The notes under the pieces are model-generated. The model was not told where the DNA came from and searched no databases. It was given only the letters and a program-made list of their open reading frames with translations. Positions 2,260-63,820 of a DNA stretch of 64,000 nucleotides are shown here, piece after piece. Numbering within the stretch: position 1 is the stretch's first letter; every line of letters starts with the position of its first letter. This DNA is from Adineta vaga (taxonomy: Eukaryota > Animalia > Rotifera). Both the position numbers and the translations under genes were made by a program. The stretch is taken from positions 13,020,001 to 13,084,000 of the forward strand of contig CP075497.1 in the NCBI GenBank assembly GCA_021613535.1. The letters are read 5' to 3'.

Positions 2260-2340
2260 ATCTTGAGGGTGTGGGTGTGGGCGTTGATTATTGCATTAAA
2301 CCTTCACCCACACCCTCAGCCATCTCCACGTCCTCAAGAT
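2260..2340. repeat. Telomere-repeat hairpin element
   Basis: ATCTTGAGGGTGTGGGTGTGGG...CACCCACACCCTCA...CCTCAAGAT. Confidence 0.85.
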
Positions 2341-3190
2341 CCCAACCCACTCCACTTCGATTCGATCGTTAATTGACTGGAGGTCAAAATTTCTTTCGAC
2401 TGCTGTATTATCGCATTTTCCCTTACTTACGATCTCAATCCGACTCTAAACAAATGAGTAAGAACTATAATAGTGTTCATGATAGCAGATTATTTAACGA
2501 CTGATATTTAAATGTAAAGTAATTTTAAATAAATATTTAGTAAATATTTGAATTTTGTTTAGTCTTTCATATTCCAAACTGAATATCTTTGAATTAATCA
2601 AAAATCTTATTGGTTATCTATAGTCGGGAGAGTGAAAGAAATTTATACTTAAACATCCTACGATAAGAATAAGTGGATATATTCGCACATGACTGAAGAG
2701 CGATAGAGAAAATATAGATAGTCATCATACAGGTATAAAAACTTTGGCTTGACACACTAGAATTACTTTGTATTTATAATAAATTACTTGATAATGAAAG
2801 TTTTTACTTTGCAAATATAGTTTATTACAATAATTTTAATTTATTAACTTAGTGTTAAAATATTTTAGTGAATATATTGTTGTCTTATTTAACTAATTAA
2901 AATGTCGATAATGATCTATAGAAGAGAGATAGTGGATGCAAAGTTTATAGTGCAGATTATCTACATTTGACATTCTTTTCGAAGTCCTGACACTATGATC
3001 TATAAATCCGATAAAGAAAATAAAATATATTTTTTAATATTTAATCCGAATGAAAATCTTGAAAATAAATTATATTTAGAATTTTTAATTAAAAATATGT
3101 CATCATTAGGTTGACGTTGTCTCTTTACTTTGAAACTTAAAAACATTAGGTGATTTTTCTCATTTCTAGAATAAGAAAAAAAAGGTAAAA

Positions 3191-4240
3191 ATGCTTAACA
3201 ATTCCAATGAAACAGTCGAAAACAACAACATTGACTCTTTTACAGTTGATAAATTATTACGATTAAAATTCAGTATTTTAATGTCAATTGAAATTCCTTC
3301 AATTCTTTGTACTTTATTAATATTTTATTATTTCATTCGATCATCTGAATTAAGAGCAAAACAAAACAATCACGTGTAAGTAAAATTTAAAAATAAAATA
3401 CATAATAAATCTATTATTTTTAGTCTTATTTGTTTATTAATCAGTAATTTTCTCACTGCAACAACCGAAGTACCAATTTCTCTTATTTATCTTTATAACA
3501 ATCAACATATTCCATCATCTAATCTTGTTTGTTTTATTTGGATCTTCTCAAATTATATTCTATTTGGATCAAGTTTTTGGATAATGGTAATTGCATCTAT
3601 TCAACGATATATTCTCATATTTCATAAACATTTTCTCAATACAAAATTCAAATATTATATACCTATTTTCTTACCACCCATATTTTTCATTCTATGGTAT
3701 ATAATTCTTATTTGTTTTTATCCATGTGAACAACAATTTGATTATAATCAATTGTGGTGTTCTGGTGCATGTTATGGATATCAAGTATTACTTAGTAGTA
3801 TTGATTGGATTATTAGTTCATTACTACCTGTTTTAATTATTATTACAATTAATATTCTTTTAATTAGAAATGTAGTTCATCAAAAATATCGAATGCAACG
3901 TGCTCGAACTTGGCGTACTACTCGAAAACTTATTATTCAACTTCTCCCGATTTCTTTTGTGTATTTTATTATCTATGTGCCTATTAATATTCTTGCATTG
4001 ATTCGACTTTGGTTCGATCCATATTTTCTTCTGGATTTCTATATGAATACATTTGCTTATTTTAATTATCTTGGACCATTATTAATACCATTTGTTTGTT
4101 TAATTGGTATTCCAGAAGTTATGGTACAGATAAAGAAATTATATTGCTTTGGCAATAGAGTACAACCGCAACAACTTCCGTTAGCACCATTTACGAGACG
4201 AATTTCACCGCACGCGAACAGATTAATGACACTGTCTTGA
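3191..4240 (+). CDS. Rhodopsin-like (class A) GPCR, 2 exons
   Basis: Intron 3376-3423 joins ORFs 3191 and 3584 in frame. Seven hydrophobic segments; ASIQRY (DRY-like) motif. Confidence 0.85.
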
Positions 4241-4383
4241 GGGTATGCGTTCTCACTGAGAAAAAGATTTCGTTGGAATCACTTCTAATTTTCTATATCT
4301 TTTATGTAGTAAAATAATGATTTCTGACCCTTCAACATCAGTTTATTCCTCTTTACAAAAATAAAAATCTTAAACTGTATAGT

Positions 4384-4446
4384 TCTTGAGGGTGTGGGTG
4401 GATGAGTGTGAATATCTCCTCTTCTTTCACACCCACACCCTCAAGA
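4384..4446. repeat. Telomere-repeat hairpin element (perfect 17-bp stem)
   Basis: TCTTGAGGGTGTGGGTG (4384-4400) pairs with CACCCACACCCTCAAGA (4430-4446); lies between convergent stop codons. Confidence 0.92.
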
Positions 4447-4459
4447 TATGTTAATGTTT

Positions 4460-6393: not shown

Positions 6394-8127
6394 TCATAGA
6401 TTTTTAATTGTTCTTGAATGAAATGATATAGTTAAAGAATATTGATCTTGTTCAAAAGTAAACTTTTCTTGTTTAAATGTTAACCATTCAATAAGTTCCA
6501 TCCAAATCATTGGTAGTGGATAATAATGAAGAAATTTAAAATTTTCTACATTTTGAATTCGTTGAATAATCCATTTCATAAAATCTAAATCATCTGTTTT
6601 TATTTTCAATTGATTTATACGAATATTTAATCCAGTAAATATTTTATCTATCATAGTTTTCAAACAACCATATCTATAACAGATTCCCAATGAATGAAAA
6701 TATGTTGATATACAAAGTAAACTTTGAATAGCTTCAATACAATTAAATTCATAACCATCGATTACAATCCAAATATTATGTACGAAGTTAAAAATATTTG
6801 ATATCGTCAAAAAATACTTCAATGACTGAATCGATGAAATCTCATCAATTTGCAATGCCAACTCCGCTATGTTGTTTACAAATGGAGATAACCTTGATTT
6901 ATACTAAATCAAAAAAAAAGAAGGTACGATATCTATAAGTATGTCGATGTTTGGTTAAAAACATACCCATTCTATACCATAATGAAATGCATTATGATTG
7001 GCAGTAAGAAAAACATTCCATAACGTTATTTGATTATTATAACTCATTGTTGATGTTGAACAAAAGATTGTTTTATAATTACAATGATGTGGAAAAAATG
7101 TTTGAACATTTGTTGATGAATAAATTGTTAATTCTGACCATTGAGACCAATTATAAACTTCACAAATGATTGGCCAAGATTTTTCTTCTAACCAAAATGA
7201 TGAACGAAATGCATTGATTAATGTTTCAATATGATTAATATGAAAATCTTCACAAGTTAGAGAAAACTGAAATTTATAAAGATAAACTAAATTTTTTTGA
7301 ATAAAATTTTCCCATTGAGATAATCGTTGAAAACAATCAAATCGACTTTTCGAATTTCTTATATAAAGATGTGTTAATAATGGTGTAAAATATAAAATAA
7401 ATTCAAGTTGATCAATTGTTAATTTTGTTTGATAAAATGTTAAATGAGTTAATGAATTAGAAATAAAATTATGTTCCATTGAATTCATTTGACAATCATA
7501 TAATGATAATCGACGAAGATTTGGACAATTATTAATTATGGAAATCAATTGTTTATCAGTACAAATGTTTAGATGAATTATTTCTAAAGAAGATGATGAA
7601 AACTCTTGTTTAATATTAAACATTAATCGAACAGAACGAAGTGAAGATTGTAAAAATAATTTGAAAAGAAGATTCAATATTTCATCGGATATATTGATTT
7701 GTTGTAAAGAATAAATTGAAAATGATCGAAGATGACATGTTGTTACTAAATGAGATAAAATTTGTTTTAAATAAAATTCATCAAGATTCCAAATTGTTAA
7801 GAATTCAAGTTGAAGAAATTCTTTGATTTCAAATAATGAAAAAAATGATTCAATTAAATTTTGATTTATACACCAAAGATGTAAAGATATAACATTTTCT
7901 GGTCGAATGATTTGAACAATATGATTGAATTCATAATCTAATATTGTATTTAAATGAAGTTTATATCGATTATAATGATTTGTTATTCGATAAAAATCTC
8001 GACAAACATAACGAAATGAAAAGATAATTGTTTTTATATCCAAATAATCACATATTTGACAAAGAAGTTCAACAGGTAATTGAAGAAATAATGATTTTTG
8101 TTCGACACAATAAGCCATATTTACCAT
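6394..8127 (-). CDS. F-box/LRR-like protein, 2 exons
   Basis: F-box motif FLQLPVELLCQICDYL; degenerate LRRs (CPNLRRLSL); intron 6966-6904. Confidence 0.85.
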
Positions 8128-8197
8128 GTGAATATAATCATGAGAAGAAAAAAAAACAACTTTCTTTTTTTCTTTCTGTTCTTTCGTAATCTATTTT

Positions 8198-8240
8198 TTG
8201 AGGGTGTGGGTGTAAGTCGTAAGAAACACATCCTCAAGAT
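8198..8240. repeat. Telomere-repeat hairpin element
   Basis: TTGAGGGTGTGGGTGT...ACACATCCTCAAGAT, about 70 bp upstream of the F-box ATG. Confidence 0.8.
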
Positions 8241-8486
8241 CAAATCTTCTCGTTCACATAAAAATACTTCAACTTTCTTTTCGAAGGATGGATAAAATAA
8301 ATCTTTATTTCTATTTCGATTTATATGAATTCTGTCTCCTCTCCAATCTGGTGTCTTATTTATCTAACTGGTTTCAATTGAAAATATATTTTATTGTATA
8401 TGATGGAGATCATTTAGTCAACGACAATTGGGAGAAAACAATTTGCTTTATTTACGTTTTATTCTTTTCTTTGATTCTTTAAACAG

Positions 8487-8646: not shown

Positions 8647-8914
8647 GTCAGTTGATAAAGTTCTTCTAAATCAATTTCATGATTTTCTATTTTTGGGGAT
8701 CAAACAGAAATTTACTATACCGTATCAATGGTTGTGGATGTGAAAGAAGAAGGGATACACTCACACCCATATTCACAGCCATTTATTATTTTGTCAAATA
8801 GAAAAACTAGAAACTGATATTGTCATCACTACGATCAACACTAAACAAGTTATTCATTCTATAATACTAGTCAATAAAGAAAAATATTTATTTTGTTATT
8901 TATTCAAGTTAGAC

Positions 8915-9320
8915 GGTCTTGAGGGTGGGTGTGGTGTTGATGGGATTGATGAGTAAATATGCCACTCACCCACATCCTCAAGACCCGTTGCTTTGCTCAT
9001 TGACCGGGCCTTCGCAGCACCCTCACTCTGTGCTTGAATCTAGGATTGGACTTAGTTAGTTTTGGGGGTAACGGAATTGATATCTTGAGGATGTGGGTGT
9101 ATGGCATATTTACTCATCAATCCCATCAACACTATACCCACCCACTCACAAAAATCAAAGAATGTACGTGAGTTATAATTGTCAATGAATGTAGGACTGA
9201 CATGATTGTTTTATTTTTGATGATTTGAACCACTATATTGTACACTTGCAATGAGAGTATCGGTGTACATGAGGCTATGCTCTTAACCCACACCCTCACA
9301 CACACCCACACCCTCAAGAT
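8915..9320. repeat. Cluster of three telomere-repeat hairpins (8915-8985, 9082-9148, 9252-9320)
   Basis: All have GAGGGTGTGGG-type arms; the first two are inverted copies of each other, loop included. Confidence 0.85.
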
Positions 9321-10589
9321 GCTACTCCTCCAAACGAATTTGTACCTTCCTGTGTAACTAATTGGTAATTCGGGAAAGATGGAGAATTTCTTATTGATTT
9401 ACTTCCTATTTCGGTTAGAATACATATCTGTAGAGAGTAATTAGCTATAAGTTCATCGATATCAGCAATATGACTATTTAATGAATGGACATTATATACT
9501 AGGAAGAGAAGATTATTATTCTTGATATCGGGTCTGTCTTTTCTCCATTTTTTACATAGATCAGTCAAACATACTTTATTGTTCCATTCTGCAATAATTT
9601 GTTTTAATTCTAAAATGTCTTTTTTCGGTCCACTGAAGTTGTCAGTTATATTTTCATTAATTGTCGGCGGATAATATCTGAATTCGTTAATATTCATTGT
9701 TTTCATTTGCTTGTTTAATAACTTCCAGTAATTTTACCGTAATATCATCTATCAGTGGTTTGTAAGTGGAAAAGAGTTTGTCCAATGACAATTTTTGTTC
9801 ATTATATGGAATTAAAGATAAATTTTTTGCCATTTCAATATTTTGTGTATCACCTGATTTCGATAACATAAAACACAGACCTTCATTTGTCATTCGTTGA
9901 TAATCAATACATTCATTTATTGTTTCATTTTGTTTTTGTACTATTGAAGAAAAGCATGAGATTAGTGTTTGTACTCTGCTAATGCTTGATTTTAATTGAT
10001 TTTTAATTTCCATGTGCATTTTCTCGTATTCCATTTTTGCAATATAACAAGAATTTTCCATTTGATTTACTTTTAATTGTAAGTTGCTAATCATATCGGG
10101 AGATTTTGTGTACGAATTTGTTTTTGCTGGTGACGGAAGTTTTGGCCACTCACTATATGAATTTGTATTATATTGATAATTTGTAGTCGGTTGAGTTTTA
10201 CTGTTTCCAATTACTTTAACACCTTTCATACGATATTGAGAAGGAATAAATATTTGTATATCATCAGGTAGTGATTCCGGGTGTTGTTGTATTACTTGTA
10301 TTAGTTCACTACGATACCTTTTCACCGAAGGGCAATTAAAATCAGTTGATATGTGATCACCTTCACAGTTATGACATTTAATTTCACAGTCATTATGTTC
10401 TTCATTCTTCCTCTCTCCACCACATCTTCTACATCGATCGAATGATAAGGAGCATTGTTTTCTAATATGACCAGGTTCGTTACATTTCGAGCAGAAGAGT
10501 ATTTTTGGTGCAGCAAAATATTCCACAATATGAAGTGATTGACCTTCTATGCATATTATACACGAACATAATATTTCTTTTGAACACAC
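9314..10589 (-). mobile_element. Truncated non-LTR retrotransposon: gag-like ORF1 (9687-10589) plus start of the APE endonuclease ORF2 (9314-9706)
   Basis: Three zinc knuckles (CSKCNEPGHIRKQC, CRRC..H..C, CHNCEGDH..C). Overlapping ORF2 has APE motifs VYNVHSL, ICILTE and GGVA; no RT domain. Confidence 0.85.
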
Positions 10590-10704: not shown

Positions 10705-10926
10705 CGAGTGTGAATATACACTCACCTTCAAGATAGTAAATCACTAGAAGTTTTCGAGGATGTGGGTGTAGGTGTTTAAATACCAATGCTTTCACACCGT
10801 CGCCCACATCCACGGTCACCCACCCTCGCATCCACACCCTCAATTATGTTGAAACGTTCAGAAGATTATTATCTTGAGGGTGTGGGTGTTAGTATTAGTA
10901 TCTCTTCATCCACACCCATACCCTCA
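10705..10926. repeat. Cluster of telomere-repeat hairpins (best copy 10871-10926)
   Basis: ATCTTGAGGGTGTGGGTGT...ACACCCATACCCTCA; further copies at 10755-10843 and 10705-10733. Confidence 0.8.
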
Positions 10927-11154
10927 TGCGCTGTCATAAAACAAAATCATAGTCTTGCCCCCGCTGTGTGTATCACTTGAATAAGTTCATTTAATACTTT
11001 TAAATCTTCTTATTGAAAATTGAAGTTCTAAAAGAAGATGAAACTTTTTTTATTAATGGTTCTTTATAATAGAGAGTTGATAAATAAAAATGTAAGAAAT
11101 CACGAGAGAAAATGATTAAAATCCAAAAGATAAAAAAATCAAGTTGATACTTTT

Positions 11155-14121: not shown

Positions 14122-16545
14122 ATGCAAAGCAATATGGATGATCTTAAGAATAAATTATCAACAATAACAATTCCATCTAATAATATTCGTTTTAGACGAC
14201 ATCCTATTCAAGGTTACATGTTGATTTGGCTTGATACAAAGATAGATAAATCAAATGACGATTTTAAAGATATTTTGGCACAATTGCAAAACATTGTTAA
14301 TATTGTCAATATGTTTACCGAAGTGGATCAATGTATAGATTTTCTCAATGAAATCAAAAGTATGAAAGCTTTCTTAATTGTAAACGGTAATATTGATGAA
14401 GAAACAGTATCTTTGATTCATGATCATCCTCAACTTCAAGCCATTTACATCCTGTGTGAAGCGATATCTTATCACGAAGAATGGACGAAACAATTGCCCA
14501 AAATTCAAGGTCTATATTCAGAAATACAATCTCTTTACGAGACATTACAGTTAATGGTGAAACAATATAATGCCGATTCTATTGCCATGAGTTTTGTTTC
14601 GGTAGATGAAGAAGTGTCTAATAAAAGTTTGAATCAACTGGAACCATCATTTATGTACACTCAAATATTTAAAGAAATTCTTCTCGAAATGAAACATGAA
14701 ACACATACTATTGATAATTTTGCTCTTTACTTGCGTGAACTCTACAAGAATAACATGATTCAACTAGGAATTATTGATGAATTTGAATGTGATTATCATT
14801 CAGAAAAGTCTATCTGGTGGTATACACGAACATCTTTTATCTATGAAACATTAAATCAAGCACTTCGTCATCTGGAAGGTGATACAATTATTAATATGGG
14901 TTTCTTCATTCATGATTTACATCACGAAATTGAAAAGTTACACAAAGAGCAGTTGAAAACTTATCATCAAGAACCATTCGTATTATATCGAGGACAAAGT
15001 TTACGTGTTTTTGACTTTAAAAAGTTTCAAAAATCGCAGGGTGGACTCATATCCTTCAACAATTTCTTATCTACTAGTAAAAATCGAGATATTTCTCTGC
15101 TTTTTGCTGAAAGTGCCTTGAATATATCTGATACAATTGGTGTTCTCTTTCAAATATACATTGATCCTTCTGTTACATCAACTCCATATGCTGATATTCG
15201 AACTAATAGTTATTTTGAAACAGAGGAAGAAATTCTCTTTTCCATGCATAGCGTATTTCGTATTGGTGAAATCAATAAACTCAATGAAAGCAATTTACTC
15301 TACCAAATCAATCTTCAATTGACAGCTGATGATGATGTACAACTCCGTACTCTTACTAAACGTATTCAAAAGGAAACAGAACATGAAAGAGGACTAGAAC
15401 GAATGGGTGTATTACTGTTAAGTATAGGTCAGTTTAATAAGGCCGAAGATTTTTATAATATTCTACTCGAACGAACATCTGATCAAAATACTAAAGCACA
15501 TTATTATAATCAACTTGGATATGTTAAAGATGAACAAGGTGATTATAAAAATGCCATTGAATATTACGAAAAAGCAATTGAAATCAGAGTAAAAACTTTG
15601 CCAGAAAATGCTTCTCTTTTGGCTACTTCTTACAATAACATCGGTGTTACATTTCGAAGTATGGAAGATTATTCAAAAGCGCTTTTATTTGCCAATAAAG
15701 CATTTGAAATTCGAGAAGAACTTTTTCCACCGAATCATCATGAGATAGCCCAATCTTACAACAATATTGGCACAATATATGAATCAAAAGGAGAATATTC
15801 GGAAGCGCTTTTATTTTACGAAAAAGCGCTGAAAATTCGAGAGGAAATCTTCCCTTCAAACCATCCTGAAATAGCTGCTTCTTACAACAACATTGCCGGA
15901 ATACATGAACTTAAAGGACAATATTCAAATGCACTTTTATATCAACAAAAAGCCTGTGAAATATTTGAGAAAACTCTGCCTACAGATCATCCTTCGTGTG
16001 CTATTTTTTATAACAATATCGGTGAATTGTATCGAAAAATGGAAGATTATTCGAAAGCACTTTTGTATCATCAAAAAGCGATGACAATTCGAAAAAAGAT
16101 TCTCTCTCCACATCATGCGGATATGGCTCAATCCTATAAAAATATTGCCATGGTGTATTCCGAATTGTCAGAGTTCTCAAATGCATTGTTATATCTCCAA
16201 CAGGCATGTAAAATCTTCGAAGAGAACTATACGAATTCTCTTCAATTATCTGTATGTTATAACAACTTTGGACAAATATATCGAAACATGAAAAGTTATT
16301 CCGAAGCACTTTCATTCTCTGAAAGAGCACTGACAATGTTCAATAAAACTAATTCTTCAAATCAAGTTATATTTGCTTCTATCTATAATAACATTGGTTT
16401 GGTATATTATGAAACAAATGAATATTCAAAAGCTCTCACCTATCTTACGCCTGCATTTGATATTTTTCAAAATTCATTATCTCCTACTAGTGATCGTCTA
16501 CAATGTTTGCAAAAAACTATTGAAATCATAAAAGGTAGTATATGA
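14122..16545 (+). CDS. Receiver-like domain + arginine-type ADP-ribosyltransferase + TPR repeats
   Basis: R-S-E ART motifs LYRGQ, FLSTS, ETEEEILF; C-terminal 42-aa TPR array. Confidence 0.9.
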   Translation: MQSNMDDLKNKLSTITIPSNNIRFRRHPIQGYMLIWLDTKIDKSNDDFKDILAQLQNIVNIVNMFTEVDQCIDFLNEIKSMKAFLIVNGNIDEETVSLIHDHPQLQAIYILCEAISYHEEWTKQLPKIQGLYSEIQSLYETLQLMVKQYNADSIAMSFVSVDEEVSNKSLNQLEPSFMYTQIFKEILLEMKHETHTIDNFALYLRELYKNNMIQLGIIDEFECDYHSEKSIWWYTRTSFIYETLNQALRHLEGDTIINMGFFIHDLHHEIEKLHKEQLKTYHQEPFVLYRGQSLRVFDFKKFQKSQGGLISFNNFLSTSKNRDISLLFAESALNISDTIGVLFQIYIDPSVTSTPYADIRTNSYFETEEEILFSMHSVFRIGEINKLNESNLLYQINLQLTADDDVQLRTLTKRIQKETEHERGLERMGVLLLSIGQFNKAEDFYNILLERTSDQNTKAHYYNQLGYVKDEQGDYKNAIEYYEKAIEIRVKTLPENASLLATSYNNIGVTFRSMEDYSKALLFANKAFEIREELFPPNHHEIAQSYNNIGTIYESKGEYSEALLFYEKALKIREEIFPSNHPEIAASYNNIAGIHELKGQYSNALLYQQKACEIFEKTLPTDHPSCAIFYNNIGELYRKMEDYSKALLYHQKAMTIRKKILSPHHADMAQSYKNIAMVYSELSEFSNALLYLQQACKIFEENYTNSLQLSVCYNNFGQIYRNMKSYSEALSFSERALTMFNKTNSSNQVIFASIYNNIGLVYYETNEYSKALTYLTPAFDIFQNSLSPTSDRLQCLQKTIEIIKGSI

Positions 16546-16619
16546 AATAAAGTTTCGTAAATAAAAAAATCGTAAATATAATTTACCTTTTAGTAATGCT
16601 TTAACTAATAGAAAAAAAA

Positions 16620-16670
16620 GGGTGTAAATATGGGTCTCTTGTATTCATCGTCACCAACACCCTCAAAGAT
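16620..16670. repeat. Degenerate telomere-repeat hairpin
   Basis: GGGTGTAAATATGGGT...CACCAACACCCTCAAAGAT between convergent ART-TPR genes. Confidence 0.6.
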
Positions 16671-16925
16671 AAAAGTTTCTTGCTAACCCAATAATTTTAT
16701 TTTAAATGACGCTCGAATGCAGATACAGACCAAAAAAGATTTACATGAAACGAGGAAACCTAATTATTTATTACTGGATATTAAAATATATTCAACGTTT
16801 GTTTCGAGATTATGTCAGACTTAGTTCGATTCATTTTCATTGGTGAAAAAGTGTCTTCGGTTGGGTCTGTCTACAGTTATTTGTTGCCACTAAATAACGC
16901 TTCCTTTCTATTTGTAAAACATTAT

Positions 16926-19853
16926 TCATATTTTTTTCTTTGCAAATTCAATGTTGTTCTCCAAAACCTTAATGTTATGATGATTTGCGGGCAGTGAGCA
17001 GCGTAAAATTTTGAGGGCGCACTCCAAAAATGGAAGTGCATTTGAGTAGGCGCCCATCTTTCCATACACTTCTCCAATGTTATTGTAAGATGCAGCCACA
17101 TCGGGATGATTTGAGGGAAGACTTTTTTGACAGATGGCAAGACTCTTTTCAAAATGGAAAAGTGCTTTGGAATATTCACCTATACTGATAAATACCGAGC
17201 CAATATTGTTGTAAGTAGTCATTAAATGAGGATGATTTTCAGGAAGACATTTTTGTCGAATTTCAAGCGATTTCTCATAATACGAAAGTGCTTTCGAGTA
17301 TTCTGCCATTTTGAAATACAACATGCCGATATTGTTATAAGACGTAGCCACATTGGAATGATTTGAAGCAAGGTTTTTTTGACAGATTTCGAGATCTTTT
17401 ATATAGAATTCAAGTGCTTTTTTATAATCAGTCATACTATCAAACACCAAACCAATGTTCACGTAAGAAGTAGCTAAATGTGGATGATTTTCAGGAAGAG
17501 CGTTTTGCCGAATCTGCAGGGCTTTGTAATAATACGAAAGTGCCTTCAAATATTCATTAGTTTTGAAATAAACTAAACCAATGCTAGTATATGAGGTAGC
17601 CAAATCAGGATGGTTTTCAGGGAGCGTTTGTTGTCGAATTTCTAGAGCTTTTTCGTAGTATGTTAGCGCTTTGCTATACTGTTCCGTATTGTAATATACA
17701 GTACTGATATTGCTGTACGAAGAAGCCAAATCAGGATGATTAGTAACAAGAGATTGTTGTTGAATTGTAAGAGCTTTTTCATAATACGAAAGTGCTTTCG
17801 CAGACTCATCCATATTATAATATATCATGCCAATATTGTTATATAAAGAAGCTAAATTAGGATGATTCGGAGGAAGCGATTGTTGTTGAATCTGAAGCGC
17901 TTTTTCGAGAAACGAACTTGATTTCGAGTAGTTACCCATACTGTTATATAGTAAGCCAATATTGTTATAGGATTGAGCTATGTTGGGATGATTACAAGGA
18001 AGCGTTTTTTGTCGAATTTCAAGTGCTCTTTCGTGAGAACTAAGTGCTCTAGGATAATCTTTCATGTTTTCACAAACTGAACCGATATTATTATATGAGA
18101 TAGCTAAAGCAGGGTGATTTACAGGTAGAGTTTGAAGTTGAATTTCAAGCGAGTTTTGGTAATACAATAGTGCTTTCGAATATTCACCCATTTGATTATA
18201 CAGCTCTCCGATGTTATTGTGAGATTTAGCTAACGCGGAGTGATTTTTAGGAAGTAATGTTTGTTGAATTTCAAGCGCTTTTTGATAAAAATTGAGTGCG
18301 TTTGAATAGTGACTCATGTTCTGATACACTTGTCCAACGTTGTTGTACAGACTAGCGAACCATGGATTAGTCACAGGAAGAGTCGTCTCAGTAGTTTCAA
18401 GCGCTTTTTTATAGAAAAAGATCGCCTGACTATAGTCGCCTTGAGCATTTTTGATCACGCCAAGCTCACAATATGTGTGTATCTTCTCAAAATCATCGGA
18501 TGTCTGACCAAGGAGCATCGTATAAACTTGTTGAGCCTTGTCAAATTCACCTAGTTTATGTAGCAAGATGCCCAGACGATGCCATCCTTTTAGGCCTAGA
18601 AATGTCTCCTCTCTCATTCGTTCGGTTAGAACATAAAGTGATTGATCATTGTCACTAGTCAGTGTAAGTTCAACTTTCCATAATCGATTTGTATTAGTGA
18701 GTTGTTGAATATTTCCAATACGAAAAACAGTGTGCATAGAGAATAGAATTTCTTTTTCTGAATTAAAACAGCTGATATTATCTAGAGATGCGAAAGGAGT
18801 CGGCACCAATGACGGATTAATAGTAATTTGAAATAGAATCCCTATAGAATGGACATCGGTTTGAATATTTTCAAGAAAATGAAGAGATACGTTTTGATCT
18901 AGACTTGTTGACAAGAAGTTATTGAACGACATCAGCCCACCATAAGTCTGTCTTATTTTATCGAATTCTGTCATACATAAGTTTTGACCGCGATAGACAA
19001 TAAATGGTTGTACATGATCGCAATTAAACTGTGTCGAATGTAGATATTTGATATGTTCATGAAGATCTCGAATAAAAAAGCCCATTTTAATAATTGTATC
19101 AATTTCCAATGTACGTAGAGCACGATTAAGCATGGAATATAGAAAACATGAAGAAGTATACCACCATATGGGCGAATATTGGTGATATTCTCTTTCAAAC
19201 TTAGCTATATCCTTTAACATGGCATGATTATCAGCGTATTGTTGACGACAGTACGTAAGAAATTCATTTATGTGTTCTTGATCAAAGTTGATAGTAAGTA
19301 GTATTTCTTTTAATAGTTGCGTATACATAAACGATTGATCAAGTTGATCCAAGTGTTTATTTGGCGTATCATTCGTTGAAGTAAAACTAAGTGAAATAGA
19401 ATTTTGATCACATTGTCGAACAGCTTGTTCGAGTGACTCGCAAATCTGAGTGATTTCGATAAAAACACCATTTATTTTAGACCAATCTTTTGCCCATTGT
19501 TGATGAATTGATTTATTTTCACAAAAAATATAAATTGAATCGATTTGTGATAAATTATGTATAAAGGGTAGAAGGCGTTGACCGAGTGAACCAGATATAA
19601 TCAAAAATATTTTTTCATGATTAATATCAGTAATGAAATCTATACATTCGTCAACGTTCGTAAATGTGTTAAGAATATTTACAAAACATTGTAATCGAAT
19701 GAATGAATTAAGAAAATCATTACTTGATTCATCGATGGCACAATCTAACCACACAAGCATAAAATTTTGAACAATATGCCGCTTTTTGTTTTCGCAATCA
19801 AGTTGTTTTGTTGAAAGGATATTTGTATCTATACAAGCGTCTAATAAAATCAT
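16926..19853 (-). CDS. Receiver-like domain + ADP-ribosyltransferase + TPR repeats
   Basis: VYRGQ, FLSTS, NSEKEILF; long array of 42-aa HPxLAxSYNNIG TPR units. Confidence 0.92.
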   Translation of the reverse strand: MILLDACIDTNILSTKQLDCENKKRHIVQNFMLVWLDCAIDESSNDFLNSFIRLQCFVNILNTFTNVDECIDFITDINHEKIFLIISGSLGQRLLPFIHNLSQIDSIYIFCENKSIHQQWAKDWSKINGVFIEITQICESLEQAVRQCDQNSISLSFTSTNDTPNKHLDQLDQSFMYTQLLKEILLTINFDQEHINEFLTYCRQQYADNHAMLKDIAKFEREYHQYSPIWWYTSSCFLYSMLNRALRTLEIDTIIKMGFFIRDLHEHIKYLHSTQFNCDHVQPFIVYRGQNLCMTEFDKIRQTYGGLMSFNNFLSTSLDQNVSLHFLENIQTDVHSIGILFQITINPSLVPTPFASLDNISCFNSEKEILFSMHTVFRIGNIQQLTNTNRLWKVELTLTSDNDQSLYVLTERMREETFLGLKGWHRLGILLHKLGEFDKAQQVYTMLLGQTSDDFEKIHTYCELGVIKNAQGDYSQAIFFYKKALETTETTLPVTNPWFASLYNNVGQVYQNMSHYSNALNFYQKALEIQQTLLPKNHSALAKSHNNIGELYNQMGEYSKALLYYQNSLEIQLQTLPVNHPALAISYNNIGSVCENMKDYPRALSSHERALEIRQKTLPCNHPNIAQSYNNIGLLYNSMGNYSKSSSFLEKALQIQQQSLPPNHPNLASLYNNIGMIYYNMDESAKALSYYEKALTIQQQSLVTNHPDLASSYSNISTVYYNTEQYSKALTYYEKALEIRQQTLPENHPDLATSYTSIGLVYFKTNEYLKALSYYYKALQIRQNALPENHPHLATSYVNIGLVFDSMTDYKKALEFYIKDLEICQKNLASNHSNVATSYNNIGMLYFKMAEYSKALSYYEKSLEIRQKCLPENHPHLMTTYNNIGSVFISIGEYSKALFHFEKSLAICQKSLPSNHPDVAASYNNIGEVYGKMGAYSNALPFLECALKILRCSLPANHHNIKVLENNIEFAKKKI

Positions 19854-19971
19854 TCACAATTAAATGGTATATAAAAGGCGATGTATTTACCTGAATTTTG
19901 TGTTTTACCTTTGGGTTTATGAAGAATGACTAAGGAAAACAACAAAATTTATTATTCAAATTAAAAATTTA

Positions 19972-21203
19972 TTAATTTTTACTTGGATGAATAAAATCTG
20001 ATAAACCAAAACTATCCCAATGAATAGTGCCATTTTTATCTGCTATGACACATGCAAGTCTTGGCGTATCCGATGTATGTTCAGCAGAATGAAGATCATG
20101 GACCGTAGTTGCGGGAAGTGAATAAAAAATTTTATCGTTTCTTTTAACAAATCGACTTGGAATAAGATCGCACATTCTTAATGGTAATCTAAATAGTAAA
20201 GATATAACATATCTTGTAATACACTACAATATAGTTATATACTTAAAAGTGCCATTTTTCATCAACATTGATCGCTCAATATCCAAATACAGTGGATTTA
20301 GAGGTTCAATATCTGTTCCATTATTGTCAGGTAAAAATCCTTTCAGTTTGTGCAAACGCCAAGTTATTTGACCATCATTCAGTTCTTCGAGAACAACAGC
20401 AATAAGAAGTTTGAATCGGTCTTGCTGTAAGAAGTGTGTTGGCAACTGGCAAGAACAAATTAATAGGTAGGATCCCGCTCCATTACTAACTGTTAAAAAC
20501 TTACTTTAATTTCAGGTAGAACACTCATATATCTCTCATCGTAATTATTTTTGACACCTTGTACACGTCTGACATAACTTCCTTTTGTGAATTTTCTTTT
20601 TCCTTCATCACAAATAATACTTTTTGAATAATGATCTTTTTCATATGGAATAACATCACGAACAAAGACTATATGTTTTACTGGCCGACAATCATCTTGT
20701 AAAGTCAACTGAATATCATCGGATAAATTCGAAGAATGATCAGGAAGCCAGGAATCCATATCATTATTGGTAGTACTGGATGTTTGATGATCCATTGGAG
20801 AAGTACTAATCGGACTTGTTACTGATTCATTGAATGACGATGGCATATCATCATCTATCAAGAAAAACAAACATTATTACCCGATGAAAACTTTTTTTAG
20901 TTGAAACTCACTCATTGTATCAAAATCGTCCTCTGTATCACTTGCTGTTGATAGTACAACTTTAGCTTGAAGTGTTTGTTGATGTGTTTGAGGTAACCTT
21001 TGACGAAGTTCTTTATCGTAATCATCATCAAAATCAACAAATAGTCGAATTTGTTCATCATAAATTTGAAGATTAAATGAATTTTCGATCAGATTAAAAT
21101 GAGCAGTAATTTGTTGAATAGTTTCGTTTAGAGACTTTTGCGGATGAACAGTTAGAGTATATACTCGATGAGCGAACATAACAATCAGATTATATGATGC
21201 CAT
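19972..21203 (-). CDS. Protein with N-terminal ubiquitin/PB1-like region and putative Rel-homology-like domain, 4 exons
   Basis: ORF pieces 20877, 20493, 20224 and 19972 are separated by short introns. Clear paralogy to the 22405 gene; domain call is by motif resemblance only. Confidence 0.6.
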
Positions 21204-21521
21204 ATCATAAGAATACAATTTTATCGTTTGTAATCGTCGATATTTTTCGAACTAAACATACAGATAAAAAAGAAATTATTGCAAATGTGAAGCATAAAAA
21301 CTACCAAAGCTAAGTAAAACATGTGCGATATTTCTTAACAAATCTGTTTTCTTTCTTTTTTATCCGTTCTGTTAATAAATAAATAAAAGAAGGTGTGTCA
21401 TATTTTTCCGACACTATGGTTGAAAAATTTGTACTCGTGAAAAAGAATTCATCTTTTACTTGTATTGGGCAGCTTTTCTTTGTTCGTTCTGTTGATTATG
21501 GTGAAATACAATAAGTGTAAA

Positions 21522-21880
21522 TCGAAATTTCCAACTTAAGCCGGAAGACCTTATCTTCGAAAAAATAAAAGGATACAGATGCTAAATTACAGGGAAGCAG
21601 ATTTCAAGAAAGTCATCGAAGGTAGGATTTTTCCATTTGAAATTCTTAGTCTTGTATGATCATAAGATGTTCCTGAAATCGAGTAGACAATATCAATGTG
21701 ACGATTGTGACGAGATCAAAAGGCTAAGTATTATTTTTTAGATTCGTTGGGAAAACAAAAATTTCCGACATGCTTTTCCTCTTAACTCTCTCAGTTTAAA
21801 ACTACTTCCATACATTTTGCTAATGAGAAAAGATGAAAACGATGATTCATGGGCATCCGGTCGGAAGTTGGAAATTTCGA
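21522..21880. promoter_or_regulatory. Perfect 16-bp inverted motif pair (kB/NFAT-like) in the divergent promoter region
   Basis: TCGAAATTTCCAACTT (21522-21537) and AAGTTGGAAATTTCGA (21865-21880). Confidence 0.5.
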
Positions 21881-22404
21881 ACTGAATGCAGATGCGTGAA
21901 TATAATCACATAACATGTGAAAACAATCGTATAATCATTTATGTAATATAGAAACTAATTCATTTGCGGAAATTGATTGGAATAATTGGACAAATCATTC
22001 ACTGATTCTTGTCTATATAACAAATGAATCATTATACAGTTGAAATAAGACAAAAATTGTACAAAAAATCGTGATCTCTAAAGATTCAATGTCAAATTGT
22101 TTATCGCGGCATAAGTCATTCTTCCTTTTCTACTATTGTAGATGAAAACCTATAACCATAGTTAGTCATGGTTTCATTCTAATCGCTAAAACACATTGGC
22201 AAGTATTTTCAAAATCTTAAATTATAATTTACTTGCAATGTTATTATTACCGTTCTATAGTTCTAACTATTTGGCGACAACATTAATCAAGAAAAAGCGA
22301 CGGAACATCATTTTTCAACGGTATCTGCAAACTACCAACACTTCAAAAAAAAGTAGTTTGCAGAGAATCTCGTAAAAACAAAGTGAATTCCTTGTACATT
22401 TACA

Positions 22405-24173: not shown

Positions 24174-24988
24174 TTTAATCTTAATCATGTATGATACTCA
24201 GCTATTAAATTTCAAAAATGAATATTTCCTAACTGTTGAGCTATGTAACGATAAAACCTAAGTGCAATTATTGATTTTCTCCGTTGATAGTTTCACATTA
24301 TAAACATTTCCTTCTAATGCTTCTATTTGCCGTCTAGTTATACGCTACCCTCATCCACACATCCTGACAAGCTTCTAAAATTATCTTATTCCTATTAGAT
24401 GAACTATAACACCTATTTTATGCTTTTCAACAAGGAATAAACTAATAGAGTAATTAATACATGAAACATCTCTTTCATACAAGTTGTATACATAGGGAAT
24501 GGTGATAGCAGACCCAGAGTATGTTTTCAATTGGTCGGATACGCAAACTTCACAAACTGATCATCTTCACAATTGCTCACAACGAATGTTGCAAGATAAT
24601 GTATGCGAAGCTGAATATACGCCTACCATTAATATTTTACCACAGGTGCGTTGATTTATATTAAACAGGAAAATATAACTAATTGCACCGACTATAAATA
24701 CAGTTATAATATAGAATGTTGAGGCATTCTAACATTATTCGAGTAATATTAATCAAGAAAGATAAAATATGGTGATAATAAACAAAATCAAAAGCTAACA
24801 TTAACCTTTTTATTATATTTTTAAAATATGACTGATTAAAATCAGGTTCTTTTATAATTAATAAATTGAAATCCTTTTCAAAATATCGACAGTTCATATT
24901 AATTATCATCAATTTGTTCCCATATACAAATGATTTAAGTTCATAGTCAGACGGGTTAATTAGAGCTGTGAGCGACAGAACTACAGTA

Positions 24989-25047
24989 TTGAGGGTGGGT
25001 GAGGGTGAAGAAATCATAATACTCACACCCACACCCACTTGCAAGAT
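24989..25047. repeat. Telomere-repeat hairpin element
   Basis: TTGAGGGTGGGTGAGGGTGA...TCACACCCACACCCACTTGCAAGAT. Confidence 0.8.
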
Positions 25048-25153
25048 GGTTTTTCTTCAAAGATTAATTTTATGTTAAAATTAGAAATGATATCGTTAAA
25101 AAGAGAGAGGATATTGAAGAAGAATGACATGACTGTCAATTCGACCCAATAGA

Positions 25154-29115: not shown

Positions 29116-29176
29116 GGGTGAGGGTGAATGAGAGTCTTCTTATAATTTATACTTCCGTCCTTACCCACAGCATCAA
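29116..29176. repeat. Degenerate telomere-repeat hairpin
   Basis: GGGTGAGGGTGA...TTACCCACAGCATCAA. Confidence 0.45.
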
Positions 29177-35030: not shown

Positions 35031-35206
35031 TTGAGAGTGTGGATGTGATCACTTCTCTCTCTCACCCACACCCTTCTACCATTTAACCTTCTGAATATCA
35101 AGAACATTTTTTCGTTCTGTTGAATACAGAAAAAAAAAAAGATGGTGAATCATTTTCTCGAGCGAGGGTTAGGGTGTCTTTCTTTTATCCTTACCCACAC
35201 CCTCAA
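35031..35206. repeat. Two telomere-repeat hairpins (35031-35074, 35157-35206)
   Basis: TTGAGAGTGTGGATGTGA...TCACCCACACCCT; GAGGGTTAGGGTG...ACCCACACCCTCAA. Confidence 0.75.
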
Positions 35207-49530: not shown

Positions 49531-49618
49531 TTGAGGGTGTGGGTGTGGGTGTGTGGGTGTAGATGCCTTCTCTTCGTTCTCAAAGACATCTACACCCGCA
49601 CCCACCCATATCTCGAGA
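49531..49618. repeat. Telomere-repeat hairpin element, long stem
   Basis: TTGAGGGTGTGGGTGTGGGTGTGTGGGTGTAGATG...CATCTACACCCGCACCCACCCATATCTCGAGA. Confidence 0.85.
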
Positions 49619-54621: not shown

Positions 54622-54673
54622 AGAGTGTGACTGTGGGTTTGGGTGTTCCTCTTGATTCTAACACTCACACCCT
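54622..54673. repeat. Degenerate telomere-repeat hairpin 3' of ceramide synthase
   Basis: GTGGGTTTGGGTGTT...AACACTCACACCC. Confidence 0.55.
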
Positions 54674-55300: not shown

Positions 55301-55342
55301 GGGGTGTGGGTGTCTCTTTTTATCGTTCACACCCACCCTCAA
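55301..55342. repeat. Telomere-repeat hairpin element
   Basis: GGGGTGTGGGTGT...ACACCCACCCTCAA. Confidence 0.75.
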
Positions 55343-55368
55343 ACATATCACTCATCTTCAGAAACATA

Positions 55369-56297
55369 CTTAGGGTAATCCAAAAGTAGTGAGGGAGGTA
55401 CCTTATTTCCTCAAGCAGAGGTCTAAAAAAATTTCTTTTTTTACCAATAGATAGAGCGTCTTTCCCTCTATTTTTCTATGCTATTTGATCACCATTTAAA
55501 TGGTATCATACTAATAAAATTTCGATAAGAACTTTTTTTGTGTCACTCGAGCTGGTATCAATACTGCATATTATCATTCATGCGTGTTTTCATCATTTAA
55601 TAGGTTTTATCAAAAAACAAAATACACCACAAGGTGCAGCGTGAAAAGTCCTACAATTTACAAGAAACAGTTTATTTTAATTACGTGTTTTTTGCTTTCA
55701 AAAAATCAAAATTCTGTGCGACCAGCTTTCGCCGTTGGGAAAAAATCCTTTTTTTTCTACACAAACGAGAAATCTCTTCTTTCTTCTTTCATTTTTTATC
55801 ATCTAATACGTTTCATTAAAAGCGAGATATACTACATGATGCAGCGTAAAAAGCTCTACTATTTGCACAGTAAAGCTTATTGCAGTGGTTTTTAAAAAAC
55901 ACAAAATGCTGTGCTACCAATTTTCGCACGGTCAAAATTTGGTCGCTCAAAGTTTTGCCCATTTATAAAGCAAAAAGTGTGACTATAAAAAAAGGTGGCC
56001 GTATGTGGATTGTAGAGCTTTTCACGCTGCACCTTGTGGCGTATTTTGTTTTTTGATAAAACCTATTAAATGATGAAAACACGCATGAATGATAATATGC
56101 AGTATTGATACCAGCTCGAGTGACACAAAAAAAGTTCTTATCGAAATTTTATTAGTATGATACCATTTAAATGGTGATCAAATAGCATAGAAAAATAGAG
56201 GGAAAGACGCTCTATCTATTGGTAAAAAAAGAAATTTTTTTAGACCTCTGCTTGAGGAAATAAGGTACCTCCCTCACTACTTTTGGATTGCCCTAAG
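55369..56297. mobile_element. Foldback-like MITE with about 290-bp TIRs and TA TSD
   Basis: TA|CTTAGGGTAATCCAAAAGTAG...CTACTTTTGGATTGCCCTAAG|TA; arms are nearly identical. Confidence 0.9.
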
Positions 56298-56325
56298 TAT
56301 TATCTTTATAGATTGAAAAAACGAA

Positions 56326-60110: not shown

Positions 60111-60419
60111 AAAACTTTTATAACATTGTATTAATGACATAGTATTCTTTTTATTTCTATAAAAATAAAATTCCAATTGCATGCTTACATTGATTGCCTA
60201 GCAGGCAGTTTTGACATTTATTTCATCGATATGATATGCACTCCCTTTCAGGTCGCGTTGCACAAAAATAGTAAAATATGAATTCTGGACTTCAGTTTGG
60301 CTGACGTCAATTCTGATTCACTTCAGACGATCATATTTTAAATAACTTAATGTATTCTTAATATTCATTTTTTTCGATCAGTTATTCTATTATCAGGAGT
60401 TTAAACAAAATGGAGTCCA

Positions 60420-61008
60420 GCAGCTACCGGGAATTATTTTTTTGAGATTTATTCGGATTTATTAAAAATGCTCTATACATTTTGAAATAAATTCCACAGA
60501 ACCTCGCAAGTGATGATATCACGAAATCTTGGCACAGTTAACAAAGTCTTCATAAATAAATAATTTCTTTGAAGTAGTTTAACGTTAGCAGAGTTATAAT
60601 TTCACCAATCGTGCGAAGAGTTCTTAACCAAAATACATGTCATAATATGGATTTTGTGAAAGAATTGATGCAATTCTCTAAAAGAATTAATTGACCCTCT
60701 TTTATGAAAAAATCCAAACAGAAAATTTACAGATATAATCTTTCTCAGCAGCTTCCAGGACTTATTTTTATGGGATTTATTAGGATTTTATAATCAATCT
60801 CTACGTTTATCAGGATAAGTCTCACATCATTTCTCTCTCCATACATACATCCCAGAATGTGGGTGCATTGAAGTATTGATTTCATCCCGTTCCTCCTGTA
60901 ATATACATGCATACCTACAGTATGGGTGTGCGGAAATATTGACTCAATTAATAAATCCTAATAAGTCCTGTAGACAAATAAATCACAAAAAAATAAGTCC
61001 CAGTAGCC
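60420..61008. mobile_element. Old degenerate inverted-repeat element
   Basis: GCTACCGGGAATTATTTTTTTGAGATTT near 60423 versus AAATCACAAAAAAATAAGTCCCAGTAGC ending near 61007; a related copy near 60750. Confidence 0.4.
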
Positions 61009-63775
61009 CCTCGCGACGTGTTCACTGAAATTCGTGTATGAGTGTACGTAAGAAGAACTCATCTTCATTTGAATAGCTTCATGGGCTCTGATCGTTTTGC
61101 ACAACTTTCTTTTCTATTTCATGATAAATCACTTTTTATATCTGCAGTTTTCTCAAGTATTCAAAACATTTTTTGTCTTGAAAAATAAATGACTAATTCT
61201 ACTAGTCTAAAGACGTCCTTTGTGTTTACATGAAGCATAACAAGAATAGGCTAGAACTGTTTGCATCTGAATGAAGTCCACCTTCGGTAAAATCCTATCT
61301 ATAAGTCTACACGTGACATCCAACTTGAATTTTGTTATTAGCCTAATAATATTGGAAATCGAATGTACTTACGTGATAAAAGATGTTGGGATATACGAGT
61401 TGTTTTTGTATGCTCGAAATTTATTTTGCTGCGTATTTATCGTTAATGGAACTAGTGGATTTTTTTTGTCCAACTTTCTAACACGCTGCAAGTGATGTCA
61501 CGTACTACGAATGTGAGATGAATCCATCTATATGCTTGTTATGTTTATTTTTGTACATAGACATTTTCTTAAGTAAAACTATTTCTTTCTCTCTTTCTTT
61601 CTATCAGCCATTCTTTCTTCGTATTACTCTCGTTCTTTTTTCTTTTTTCTTTTCGCTGTTGAATCTAATTCCTCAGGTGTATTCGAAGTGTATTAAAATG
61701 TATCTTTAATATTTCATCCTTTTCATGATCTTGCATATAAACAATAGTGTAATATTCGTAACGTGAATTCAACTATTCAAATATTCAAGTATTACACATA
61801 TAAAAAATTTCATACAATCGTATATAATTCTTCTCCATAGTTATCGTTTATGTTAGACCGTTCCAGATGTTGATATTCTGGAAAAACTAGATCTATTTCA
61901 CCGAAATTCTTTCCAATTAGACCTGTCATATACATACTCATATGGATAAAATTTCTCAATCTATTTCTATATACTACTGTAATAAAAAAATATTTATTAG
62001 TTTTTTTTAAATCAACTATCGTCTAACTATATTTCTATCTAAATATATCATGACTGCATACTCATATATAAAGAAAAGTATAGATCCCTATATCACTGTA
62101 TAGTGTCAAACGATATTATAAAAATATAAATTTGTACGACAGAAGTAATTTTATTAATGATTTTCTTTTCTCATACGATGCTATAAAACAATACTCGTTC
62201 GAACAAAACGAGTAAATTATCACATAACTATATCACTTGGGTGACCACAAAAAAAAGATATGTGAATTAAAATAATAAACTTCTGTATGATTACATTCTC
62301 TTCAATAATACTATAAAGAACATTCATTTATCTTAAATAAGTAAAACCTCATGCGATTATATTCTGCTCGTAAATAGCATAAAAGTAGTTCATTCGCATC
62401 AAATGAATAAACTTTCATAACATTATACTCTATTCGAGAATGGCATAAAAATAATTCATTGTGACGGATTCCATAAATTGCCACATGAATATATTCTTCT
62501 TGCAGATACTATAAGACAATTCACTTAAATAAGCTAAACAAAGTTTTATATACTTATATTCTCTTCAACACCAGTATAGAAGAAATATTTACTTAAAAAA
62601 AATAAATCAAAATTCATTTTACCATGTTCTTTTCATCAATAATAAAAATACTTTGTTTACATGAAATAAATACACTTCCACATCATTATGTTCTTTCCAA
62701 ACGTACCATATAATAATCCACATCAGTATGAACAAAATAAAATCCTGAATTATTATATTATCTCTGACGGTGCTGCAAAGAAAACCCGTTTCAATAATGA
62801 ATAACATTACAAACGAATGTATTGTCCTCGAAGACGCTATTAAAACATTTATTTAAAGTAAATACAAAACTTCCATATTATCAAATTCTCTCCAACCACA
62901 ACCTACAAAAATATCCATTTAAATGGAATAAATACAACTTCGTATTATCATCTTCTATCGATGAATACCATCAAATAATGCTTATCAATAACAAGTAAAT
63001 GAAAGGAAATATCATCGCATCGTATCCAACGATACTACGGGAAACAAAACCGTTTGAGTGCAGAAAATAAAGTTTGGTACAATAAAATCAACTTTTCCAA
63101 TAGCGTACAACTATTAATTTTAATCCAATAACTAATATTTTCTCCAACTATACTCTCTCCAACGACTCTAGAAAAGAAGCATTATTCGAACTCAATAAAG
63201 AAACCTAAGACAAAACTTCAATACTATCAACCTTCTGCATCATACTACTGAAATACTTATTCCAAATCATTATATGTAAACATATCATTCGAACTATACC
63301 AATTTCAAGGTAGATTACTCCCATAACGTATGAAACAACATCTATACAACAAATGCAAGTTATCGATTTCGTCAGCACATTTGATCTTACACTCAAATAA
63401 CCGATTCATATTCCACGCACTGTTTAACAAATACGGAAAAAGTGAGGGATCTATGTATCCACTGATGCATGTTTCGCCCTACCCCACACTGAGCGATATG
63501 AATAGTTGAATTCAAGTTTCAAGTATTACACATGTGCATATGGAGAGAAAAAATATGTGTTTGAATATAAGAAGCATTCTTTTTCAAACTATATCTGAAA
63601 AACCCAATCCGTAGTCAAATCGTTAAAATTTTTGTGAAACCAATCGATTTTCTGTATGAATTGCTTTTAGCCATTTCGGTTTATCTCCAGCTGTCATTTT
63701 GATTCATCTAACAGGATTTTTCTATGAATCAGTTTAATTGAAGAAACAAAAACAAATAATATTATGTGCGGAATA

Positions 63776-63820
63776 GGGTGTGGGTGAAGATGTCCTATAT
63801 TGACTCACACTCACCCTTGA
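63776..63820. repeat. Telomere-repeat hairpin element
   Basis: AGGGTGTGGGTGA...TCACACTCACCCTTGA. Confidence 0.7.

Follow-up and report, generated by a model that had tools for sequence, protein, structure and literature searches.

Bdelloid rotifers tolerate massive DNA breakage, and foreign genes are unusually numerous near the ends of their chromosomes. Scattered through a 64,000-nt stretch of Adineta vaga DNA (contig 6, positions 13,020,001-13,084,000; hereafter the window) are short palindromes, each composed of a G-rich arm, a variable loop and a C-rich arm (hereafter hairpins). What are these hairpins, and how did they arise? An earlier note, made from the sequence alone, had listed about 18 of them and offered three explanations: (a) paired sites for a telomere-repeat-binding protein, (b) scars of telomerase-assisted healing and rejoining of double-strand breaks, and (c) a hairpin system resembling the attC sites of integrons or bacterial repetitive extragenic palindromes (REP). 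The short palindromes are real. Each is built from two runs of the telomere repeat of the rotifer itself, facing inward, and the second explanation fits them best, in view of their polarity, independent arms, variable-entry edge and position at segment ends. In our opinion, they were probably formed when two 3' ends, each extended from one template entry point, were fused head to head via a short filler.

A dispersed family of hairpins composed of telomere repeats

The genome of A. vaga (G000) consists of six contigs (100.8 Mb in total). The window, with a G+C content of approximately 31%, is located on contig 6 (13,893,210 nt), about 0.8 Mb from the right contig end, and was analysed jointly with 200 kb of adjacent sequence (loci L006-L025), i.e. 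264 kb altogether. Statements concerning the whole genome are based on pattern searches, the printed rows of which were judged by eye.

A G-rich arm followed by a C-rich arm was found at all 18 starts given in the earlier note, with five of these copies (8198, 9252, 10705, 16620 and 29116) being degenerate, and one additional, decayed copy (8735-8781) was distinguished. The arm 14-mer TGAGGGTGTGGGTG (up to 2 mismatches) has 28 matches in the window, compared with 0.05 expected from shuffled sequences. In the genome as a whole, pairs of perfect 13-nt arms separated by no more than 30 nt occupy 37 sites (182 when one mismatch is allowed), while the reversed control gave 0. On contigs 1 and 3 all of the listed sites fall within the outer few Mb. 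The 264-kb region contains 56 G tracts and 60 C tracts, and 70 arm clusters with a median spacing of 2.5 kb, in which apparently single arms mostly have a decayed partner. By extrapolation, the genome would contain several thousand hairpins.

The arms are runs of TGTGGG and TGAGGG, and thus match the telomere of the species itself, a comparison that the earlier note had recommended: TGTGGG is the reported telomere repeat of A. vaga and is present at every AV20 scaffold end (PMC8494291, PMC7943196). Six copies folded as single-stranded DNA gave energies of -13 to -20 kcal/mol (z-scores of -3 to -6). The G-rich arm had been described as always coming first, and this order indeed prevails: among tracts separated by no more than 80 bp in the 264 kb, there are 39 G-to-C pairs, 4 C-to-G pairs, 3 C-C pairs and no G-G pair.

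Arm independence

The arms range in length from 11 to 77 nt, and the two lengths within a hairpin are uncorrelated (rho 0.22). Complementarity between the arms of the same element (0.711) does not differ from that between arms of different elements (0.713; permutation p 0.56). Since the arms are no more complementary within than across hairpins, neither arm was copied from the other, and the stem is without compensatory maintenance. Two mechanisms considered as candidate origins were rejected: snap-back copying of one arm from the other, which is ruled out by arm independence, and a protelomerase-type site, the centre of the hairpins not being palindromic.

The same result bears on the view that the hairpins are selected cis-elements, i.e. 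paired telomere-repeat-binding sites, boundary or terminator elements at gene ends, or attC-like recombination sites. Such elements would suit the distribution of the family, which is intergenic, as had been claimed: only 12 of the 70 arm clusters are placed inside long open frames, which make up 45% of the sequence, and more clusters lie nearer the 3' ends of long frames (23) than nearer the 5' ends (10). The persistence of the arms across species, while neighbouring genes diverge, would also agree with selection. Avoidance of coding sequence is, however, expected for any tolerated scar, and recurrent copying of a conserved template would explain the arm conservation equally well; moreover, the arms show no compensatory variation, many copies are decaying and the truncation points beside the arms are arbitrary. 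We consider a cis-element origin highly improbable, and binding by telomere-repeat-binding proteins (the first of the three explanations) may be at most a consequence of the arm sequence, not its origin.

The REP/attC-like system (the third explanation) did not survive the comparison. Like integron attC sites and bacterial REP, the hairpins are imperfect intergenic palindromes with conserved outer parts and variable centres, but they lack structural covariation between the arms and a precise cassette edge, and their sequence is plain telomere repeat. The hairpin edges do not delimit cassettes precisely; truncation points are arbitrary relative to intact paralogous copies. An associated recombinase was likewise not seen: among 40 long open reading frames (ORFs) of the 264 kb searched with Pfam (at least 120 codons in the window and at least 300 in the flank; short or spliced genes lay outside the scan), none encoded an integrase or RAYT-like protein, the families present being TPR-ART (ART, ADP-ribosyltransferase), F-box, GST, P450-CDPS (CDPS, cyclodipeptide synthase) and others.

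A graded outer edge

The hexamer TGAGGG is the outermost one in 72 of 112 arms (64%), while one repeat further in its frequency is about 12%, which argues that the repeats were laid down in a fixed order. Reading outward from the first GGG in these arms, the successive consensus bases are A (64%), G (63%), T (60%) and T (41%), beyond which the composition is near background. The outer edge can be written as (CC)ATCTTGA followed by GGG, with a gradual outward fading; TCTTGA (up to 1 mismatch) is present in 24 of the 112 arms, about one in five. The phase of the arm ends, which is biased by the detection cores, was not used.

Exact ...CCCTCAAGAT sites number 159 genome-wide, compared with 0 in the control. 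The base beyond CCCTCAAGAT is G in 27 of the first 50 rows (counted by eye), often followed by a second G, giving CCATCTTGA. A motif of this kind (CCATCTTGA and then GGG), with falling penetrance, is expected if a 3' end pairs at variable positions on one template.

Hairpins at the ends of duplicated segments

Self-comparison of the 264 kb provided four cases, resolved at the level of single bases, in which a hairpin is placed exactly at the cut-off or start of a duplicated segment. In case A (L012:5512), a sequence that continues in the paralogues L014:8769 and L015:3106 stops at a complete hairpin, beyond which the DNA is unrelated. Case B is a 451-bp segment (L013:4598-5048), a 95% copy of L011:3090-3540, whose left edge lies within a G tract in both loci, and whose right edge is cut off relative to the L011 source and followed by a hairpin ending with CCCTCAAGAT. 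In case C, homology to L012:4280 begins directly past the ...TCAAGAT of the L014:7363-7407 hairpin, with a 2-nt (AT) overlap. In case D, a 4.8-kb duplication (L011:5529 and L013:8396) starts inside a G tract whose length differs between the copies (25 and 77 nt); they agree in loop, C arm and right flank, but not in the left flank. The overlap between the cut end and the motif is 1-3 bases in cases A-C. The two copies of the 4.8-kb duplication extend from L011:5529 to L012:271 and from L013:8396 to L014:3157; they are 94.8% identical, lie about 23 kb apart and carry two hairpins each.

Within the window, the frame 9317-9706 (-) runs into the arm of the 9252..9321 hairpin, and its stop codon is the arm's own TGA (9314-9316). 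This frame constitutes the downstream part of a gag-like CCHC open frame (9317-10589, minus strand) of a multi-copy rotifer family. Throughout the 264 kb, edges of duplications of at least 200 bp coincide with 7 of the 70 clusters, against 2.3 expected (p 0.011), and the difference in G+C content between 1-kb flanks is modestly larger at the hairpins (0.043) than at random intergenic points (0.035; p 0.014).

One hairpin (L009:3551-3640) has a different setting. It sits inside an approximately 700-bp element (L009:3134-3844; contig 6, ~13,117,134-13,117,844) with ~45-bp terminal inverted repeats (TIRs), at least 12 copies of which, 89-93% identical, were found, some of them in chromosome cores. 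This putative seam lies in the interior of an element derived from a DNA transposon, which spread afterwards. It follows that such seams could form between two parts of one locus, and the spread of the element accounts for occasional hairpins far from the chromosome ends. A MULE transposase around L009:3551, which was considered as a candidate, obtained no support from Pfam; the hairpin is internal to the TIR element instead. A larger palindrome is present at L014:3897-4221, with 94-bp arms (90% complementary) starting with GGGTGAGGGTGTGAG-type tracts and a spacer of about 140 bp.

Loops: unique and recurring types

The loops had been described as mutually unrelated. This holds for most of them within the region, where no more than 4 of 36 loops match another loop at a level exceeding the 99th percentile of shuffles, and the loop of the perfect-armed copy at 2265 (2284-2304) occurs nowhere else in the genome. 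It does not hold for several recurring types. Of 37 loops, 5 contain ATATC followed by a run of pyrimidines (0.18 expected), and a AAAGAAGAGAAGATAT-like loop adjoins the C arm in most of the 37 perfect-armed copies of the genome (rows read by eye). At least four further types recur at unrelated loci: (i) CATGAGGCTAT.CTCTTAA, (ii) GTT(A/G)GATAGATG.., (iii) GATGGGATTGATG.GTAAATATGC and (iv) TAGATGTGAGTGAAGAAGATATA. Loops of the AAAGAAGAGAAGATAT type are also present in A. steineri and in a Rotaria species. The repair-seam explanation can accommodate recurrent loops only if something further is assumed, either a second short template or copying that continues beyond the template.

Hairpins in other rotifers and the possibility of a mobile unit

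The family is present in A. ricciae (L037 and L038), A. steineri (L040, L041 and L055-L062) and Rotaria (L039 and L052). Perfect-armed hairpins were also identified in 11 metagenome contigs (moss), nine of which have a rotifer-like G+C content and several the ATCTT/GAGGG edge; one of these contigs matches the A. vaga genome in a gene segment only (73-75% identity). The arms and the edge are the same in A. ricciae, A. steineri and the metagenome rotifer contigs. Perfect arms beside diverging genes speak for the repeated copying of a conserved template. In ten assemblies of Rotaria socialis, one gene-dense core locus contained a single lone C-rich tract and no hairpin polymorphism.

In A. steineri, one whole unit (G tract, pyrimidine loop and C tract) is present in L056 and L057 and absent from L055 and L058. 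This extra unit lies inside the G tract of another hairpin, between colinear flanks (98% identity), and the arm lengths differ as well. The polymorphism fits a second break and re-healing in an old seam or, equally, a deletion between two G tracts. Comparison of L055:19469-19628 with L056 revealed a 159-bp CT-rich indel flanked by the direct repeat AGTATCT and adjoining a hairpin cluster. Two positions considered as rearrangement junctions (L057:5966 and L058:3389) were rejected, being single-N scaffold joins in the public A. steineri assemblies.

The presence or absence of a whole unit between colinear flanks is what would be expected of a tiny mobile unit, either a foldback element or miniature inverted-repeat transposable element (MITE), or a hairpin RNA copied by a retroelement enzyme, inserted whole at many sites. 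One loop type common to perfect-armed copies, and the recurrence of loop types at unrelated loci and in other genera, point in the same direction. Like MITEs and foldback elements, the hairpins are short, scattered units in which terminal inverted repeats enclose a variable middle part, but they differ from these elements in several respects. They have no target-site duplication (TSD), as had been noted: the longest word shared by the left and right flanks comes to 3.81 within elements and to 3.89 in permuted pairs. Their outer ends are graded, not sharp; the arms are independent, very unequal in length and fit their own partners no better than foreign ones; a perfect-armed copy has a loop that is unique in the genome; and in the resolved paralogue cases the hairpins mark homology breakpoints with non-contiguous flanks, not clean insertions. 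On the grounds of the missing TSD, graded ends and independent arms, an ordinary MITE or TIR transposon was rejected, and a mobile unit of any kind appears quite improbable. The earlier argument against a MITE is retained as regards the TSD, while its other premise, unrelated loops, is valid only in part.

Relationship to Athena and Terminon retroelements

Athena and Terminon are endonuclease-deficient Penelope-like retroelements of bdelloid rotifers (PMC6431247, PMC8557442, PMC3846280). Endonuclease-deficient Penelope-like elements prime on exposed ends and breaks (PMC3846280), and deletion breakpoints in A. vaga lines carry telomeric repeats and Athena fragments (PMC13564844). The hairpins share with these elements a subtelomeric habitat and a link to the healing of exposed ends, and the likeness extends to sequence, the 3' C-rich reverse-complement telomere repeats meeting the flank via the CCCTCAAGAT edge. 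A pattern composed of a hammerhead core and C repeats gave 32 matches in the genome (1 in the control), and its looser form gave 54 (5 in the control), several of them overlapping, i.e. about 40 sites. These sites read as hammerhead, GTC, a 12-22-nt tail and C repeats, and in several printed rows the C repeats end with CCCTCAAGAT directly before the flank. An edge of the form ...CACCCACACCCTCAAGAT before the flank closes hammerhead-bearing Athena/Terminon 3' ends as well, which shows that the edge motif is part of the telomere tract added to a healed end. The C arm of the hairpin and its outer edge are therefore identical in structure to the piece by which these retroelements are attached to healed ends.

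The hairpins might accordingly be by-products of Athena/Terminon and not of telomerase, with the C arm and loop representing cDNA of the element RNA 3' of the hammerhead (tail and C-rich repeats), whose synthesis was primed by a G-tailed end before its fusion with another end. The hammerhead-bearing 3' ends described above speak for such an origin; additionally, some loops read toward the C arm resemble hammerhead tails ((A/G)TGG, ..CTAT.., pyrimidine run), and several retroelement families would account for the several loop types. This explanation nevertheless seems unlikely to us. The likeness of loops and tails was judged by eye only, and the commonest loop follows no hammerhead (62 matches of the combined pattern against 23 in the control, all low-complexity noise). 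The hammerhead pattern has no match in any locus analysed, and the 264 kb, with about 60-70 hairpin sites, contains no hammerhead, no reverse transcriptase and (window and L006-L020) no Rfam hit at the gathering score. In addition, the second telomere tract is inverted in 39 of 43 close pairs, whereas a normal 5'-truncated Athena copy is capped in the same orientation.

Two loci of the A. vaga genome (contig 1: 556885 and contig 3: 18552933) have the same 35 nt upstream of CACCCACACCCTCAAGAT, different sequences downstream and no G arm in the printed rows. Judging from these rows, they may represent the 3' end of another family of end-attaching elements, without the hammerhead pattern that was searched for.

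Individual hairpins and neighbouring genes of the window

The hairpins of the window are listed in Table 1. The accompanying genes form a typical bdelloid subtelomeric set: ADP-ribosyltransferase-TPR (ART-TPR), F-box/LRR, GST, 7TM and VWA. The ART-TPR genes constitute a cluster (14122-27413), in which two convergent genes have a hairpin between their 3' ends. Their closest proteins in other Adineta species are only about 50-60% identical, and the orthologues (best 61%) provided no orthologous intergenic DNA for comparison. Paralogues of the window genes, considered as possible empty sites, gave matches of 64-72% identity in coding sequence only, and an exact-protein look-up with the GST gene found no record. 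An inverted duplication of about 380 bp (55366-55743 and 55921-56300; 90% identity) starts 28 bp past the C arm of the 55301 hairpin. In the adjacent sequence, a single frame (L020:2595-4103, plus strand) combines the C-terminal part of a cytochrome P450 with a cyclodipeptide synthase domain, and is likely a horizontally acquired biosynthetic gene.

Table 1. Telomere-repeat hairpins of the A. vaga window (coordinates are nt positions within the 64,000-nt stretch).
Feature	Coordinates	Arms and edges	Loop	Setting and remarks
Hairpin	2260..2340	G arm ATCTTGAGGGTGTGGGTGTGGGCG; C arm to 2318; second degenerate C-type edge ends TCAAGAT at 2340	21 nt	
Hairpin	4384..4446	TCTTGA at both outer edges	Recurrent ATATC-pyrimidine type	Flanked by the converging 3' ends of a 7TM gene and a minus-strand gene
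Hairpin	8198..8241	Perfect G arm; degenerate C arm ends TCAAGAT		Just upstream of F-box gene 6955-8127 (-)
Decayed hairpin	8735..8781	Weak arms	AAAGAAGAAGGGATA	
Hairpin	8913..8988	Palindrome reaches GGTCTTGA..TCAAGACC	Type shared with L007:6381 and L011:9076	
Hairpin	9082..9150			Inverted copy (93%) of the 8923-8983 hairpin, loop included
Hairpin	9252..9321	Degenerate G arm; long C arm ends CCCTCAAGATG	Recurrent type, CATGAGGCTATGCTCTTAA	
Very short, weak copy	10705..10734	GAGTGTG..CACTCACCTTCAAGAT		Weakest family member
Hairpin	10755..10842		Long, partly C-rich	
Hairpin	10871..10928	G side bears ATCTTGA edge		
Decayed hairpin	16619..16670			Between convergent 3' ends of ART-TPR genes 14122-16545 (+) and 16926-19853 (-)
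Hairpin	24989..25046			Just downstream of ART-TPR gene 25154-26833 (-)
Hairpin	29116..29175	C arm degenerate		
Hairpin	35031..35076			First of two between convergent 3' ends, 34923 (+) and GST gene 35356 (-)
Hairpin	35157..35205		Pyrimidine-rich	Second of two between 34923 (+) and GST gene 35356 (-)
Hairpin	49531..49610	G tract 27 nt	Internally palindromic (TAGATG..CATCTA)	
Short decayed hairpin	54622..54672			
Short hairpin	55301..55341			
Short hairpin	63773..63818			Close to window end

Discussion

According to the explanation that we favour, each hairpin would be a repair seam between two DNA ends, either the two sides of one break or the ends of different fragments. Both 3' ends would gain the bdelloid telomere repeat from a reverse transcriptase copying one RNA template, and the extending enzyme could be telomerase or an Athena-type reverse transcriptase. 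Entry on the template would occur at or near ...CCATCTTGA, followed by GGG and then by TGTGGG repeats, so that the tail expected on a healed end is a part of CCATCTTGA and then GGGTGTGGG; the template region of the telomerase RNA or Athena RNA should therefore be able to give ATCTTGAGGGTGTGGG. Two such tails facing each other produce a G-rich and then a C-rich tract on one strand. They would be joined through a short filler, i.e. the loop, partly copied from a few short recurring templates, which would generate the recurring loop types, and partly unique. The seams would then be inherited, copied with their flanks and slowly decay, and recombination or copying starting in the telomere tracts would turn them into boundaries of duplicated blocks. 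In this scheme, we infer which enzyme was involved, in what order the steps took place and where the loops came from, while the polarity, arm independence, graded edge, position at segment ends, missing TSD and occurrence across species were shown by the analysis.

Telomeric repeats within chromosomes are also known from other organisms. Head-to-head interstitial telomeric sequences, such as the human 2q13 fusion site, likewise consist of the organism's own telomere repeat, are located inside chromosomes and are linked with break repair, and the 2q13-type fusion has the same G-rich-then-C-rich polarity. The bdelloid hairpins differ in their tiny arms (11-77 nt) and estimated number (thousands), as well as in the fixed non-telomeric entry motif at both outer edges and the short spacer of recurring types. 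Telomerase-inserted short interstitial telomeric repeats are also known from repaired breaks (reviewed in PMC6410037); the repair-inserted repeats of vertebrates are, unlike the hairpins, runs of a single orientation.

Several observations weigh against repair seams. The recurring loop types are polar and kept from Adineta to Rotaria, which is unexpected for random filler. The sole presence/absence polymorphism (L056 versus L055) has the appearance of a unit cleanly gained or lost, as would also be expected with a mobile element. The enrichment of hairpins at duplication edges is modest (about 3-fold), and most hairpins are without a paralogue or allele, a junction being seen for a handful only. 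Finally, no telomerase RNA gene candidate was singled out among the template-like 18-mer sites (80-letter rows). We know of no described bdelloid telomerase RNA, and the proposed template is thus putative.

A bolder extension of the repair-seam model, possible but rather doubtful, is that the arms and the graded edge are print-outs of the bdelloid telomerase RNA, with the putative template being approximately 5'-CACCCACACCCUCAAGAUGG-3'. The commonest loop would then be read-through 5' of the template, and the subtelomeres would be stitched head to head from gene-sized pieces, native and foreign, telomere-tailed at both ends.

The literature that we found on these regions describes short telomeric stretches and Athena elements, and not an organised head-to-head unit with an entry motif and recurring spacers. 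With the fixed entry motif, a concrete sequence is at hand for a search for the telomerase RNA. If the hairpins are seams between telomere-tailed ends, each of them is a dated record of one joining event, and as a set they record how the chromosome ends of this rotifer were patched together. Should the telomerase-RNA print-out be true as well, horizontally acquired genes would have come into the genome by way of these seams.

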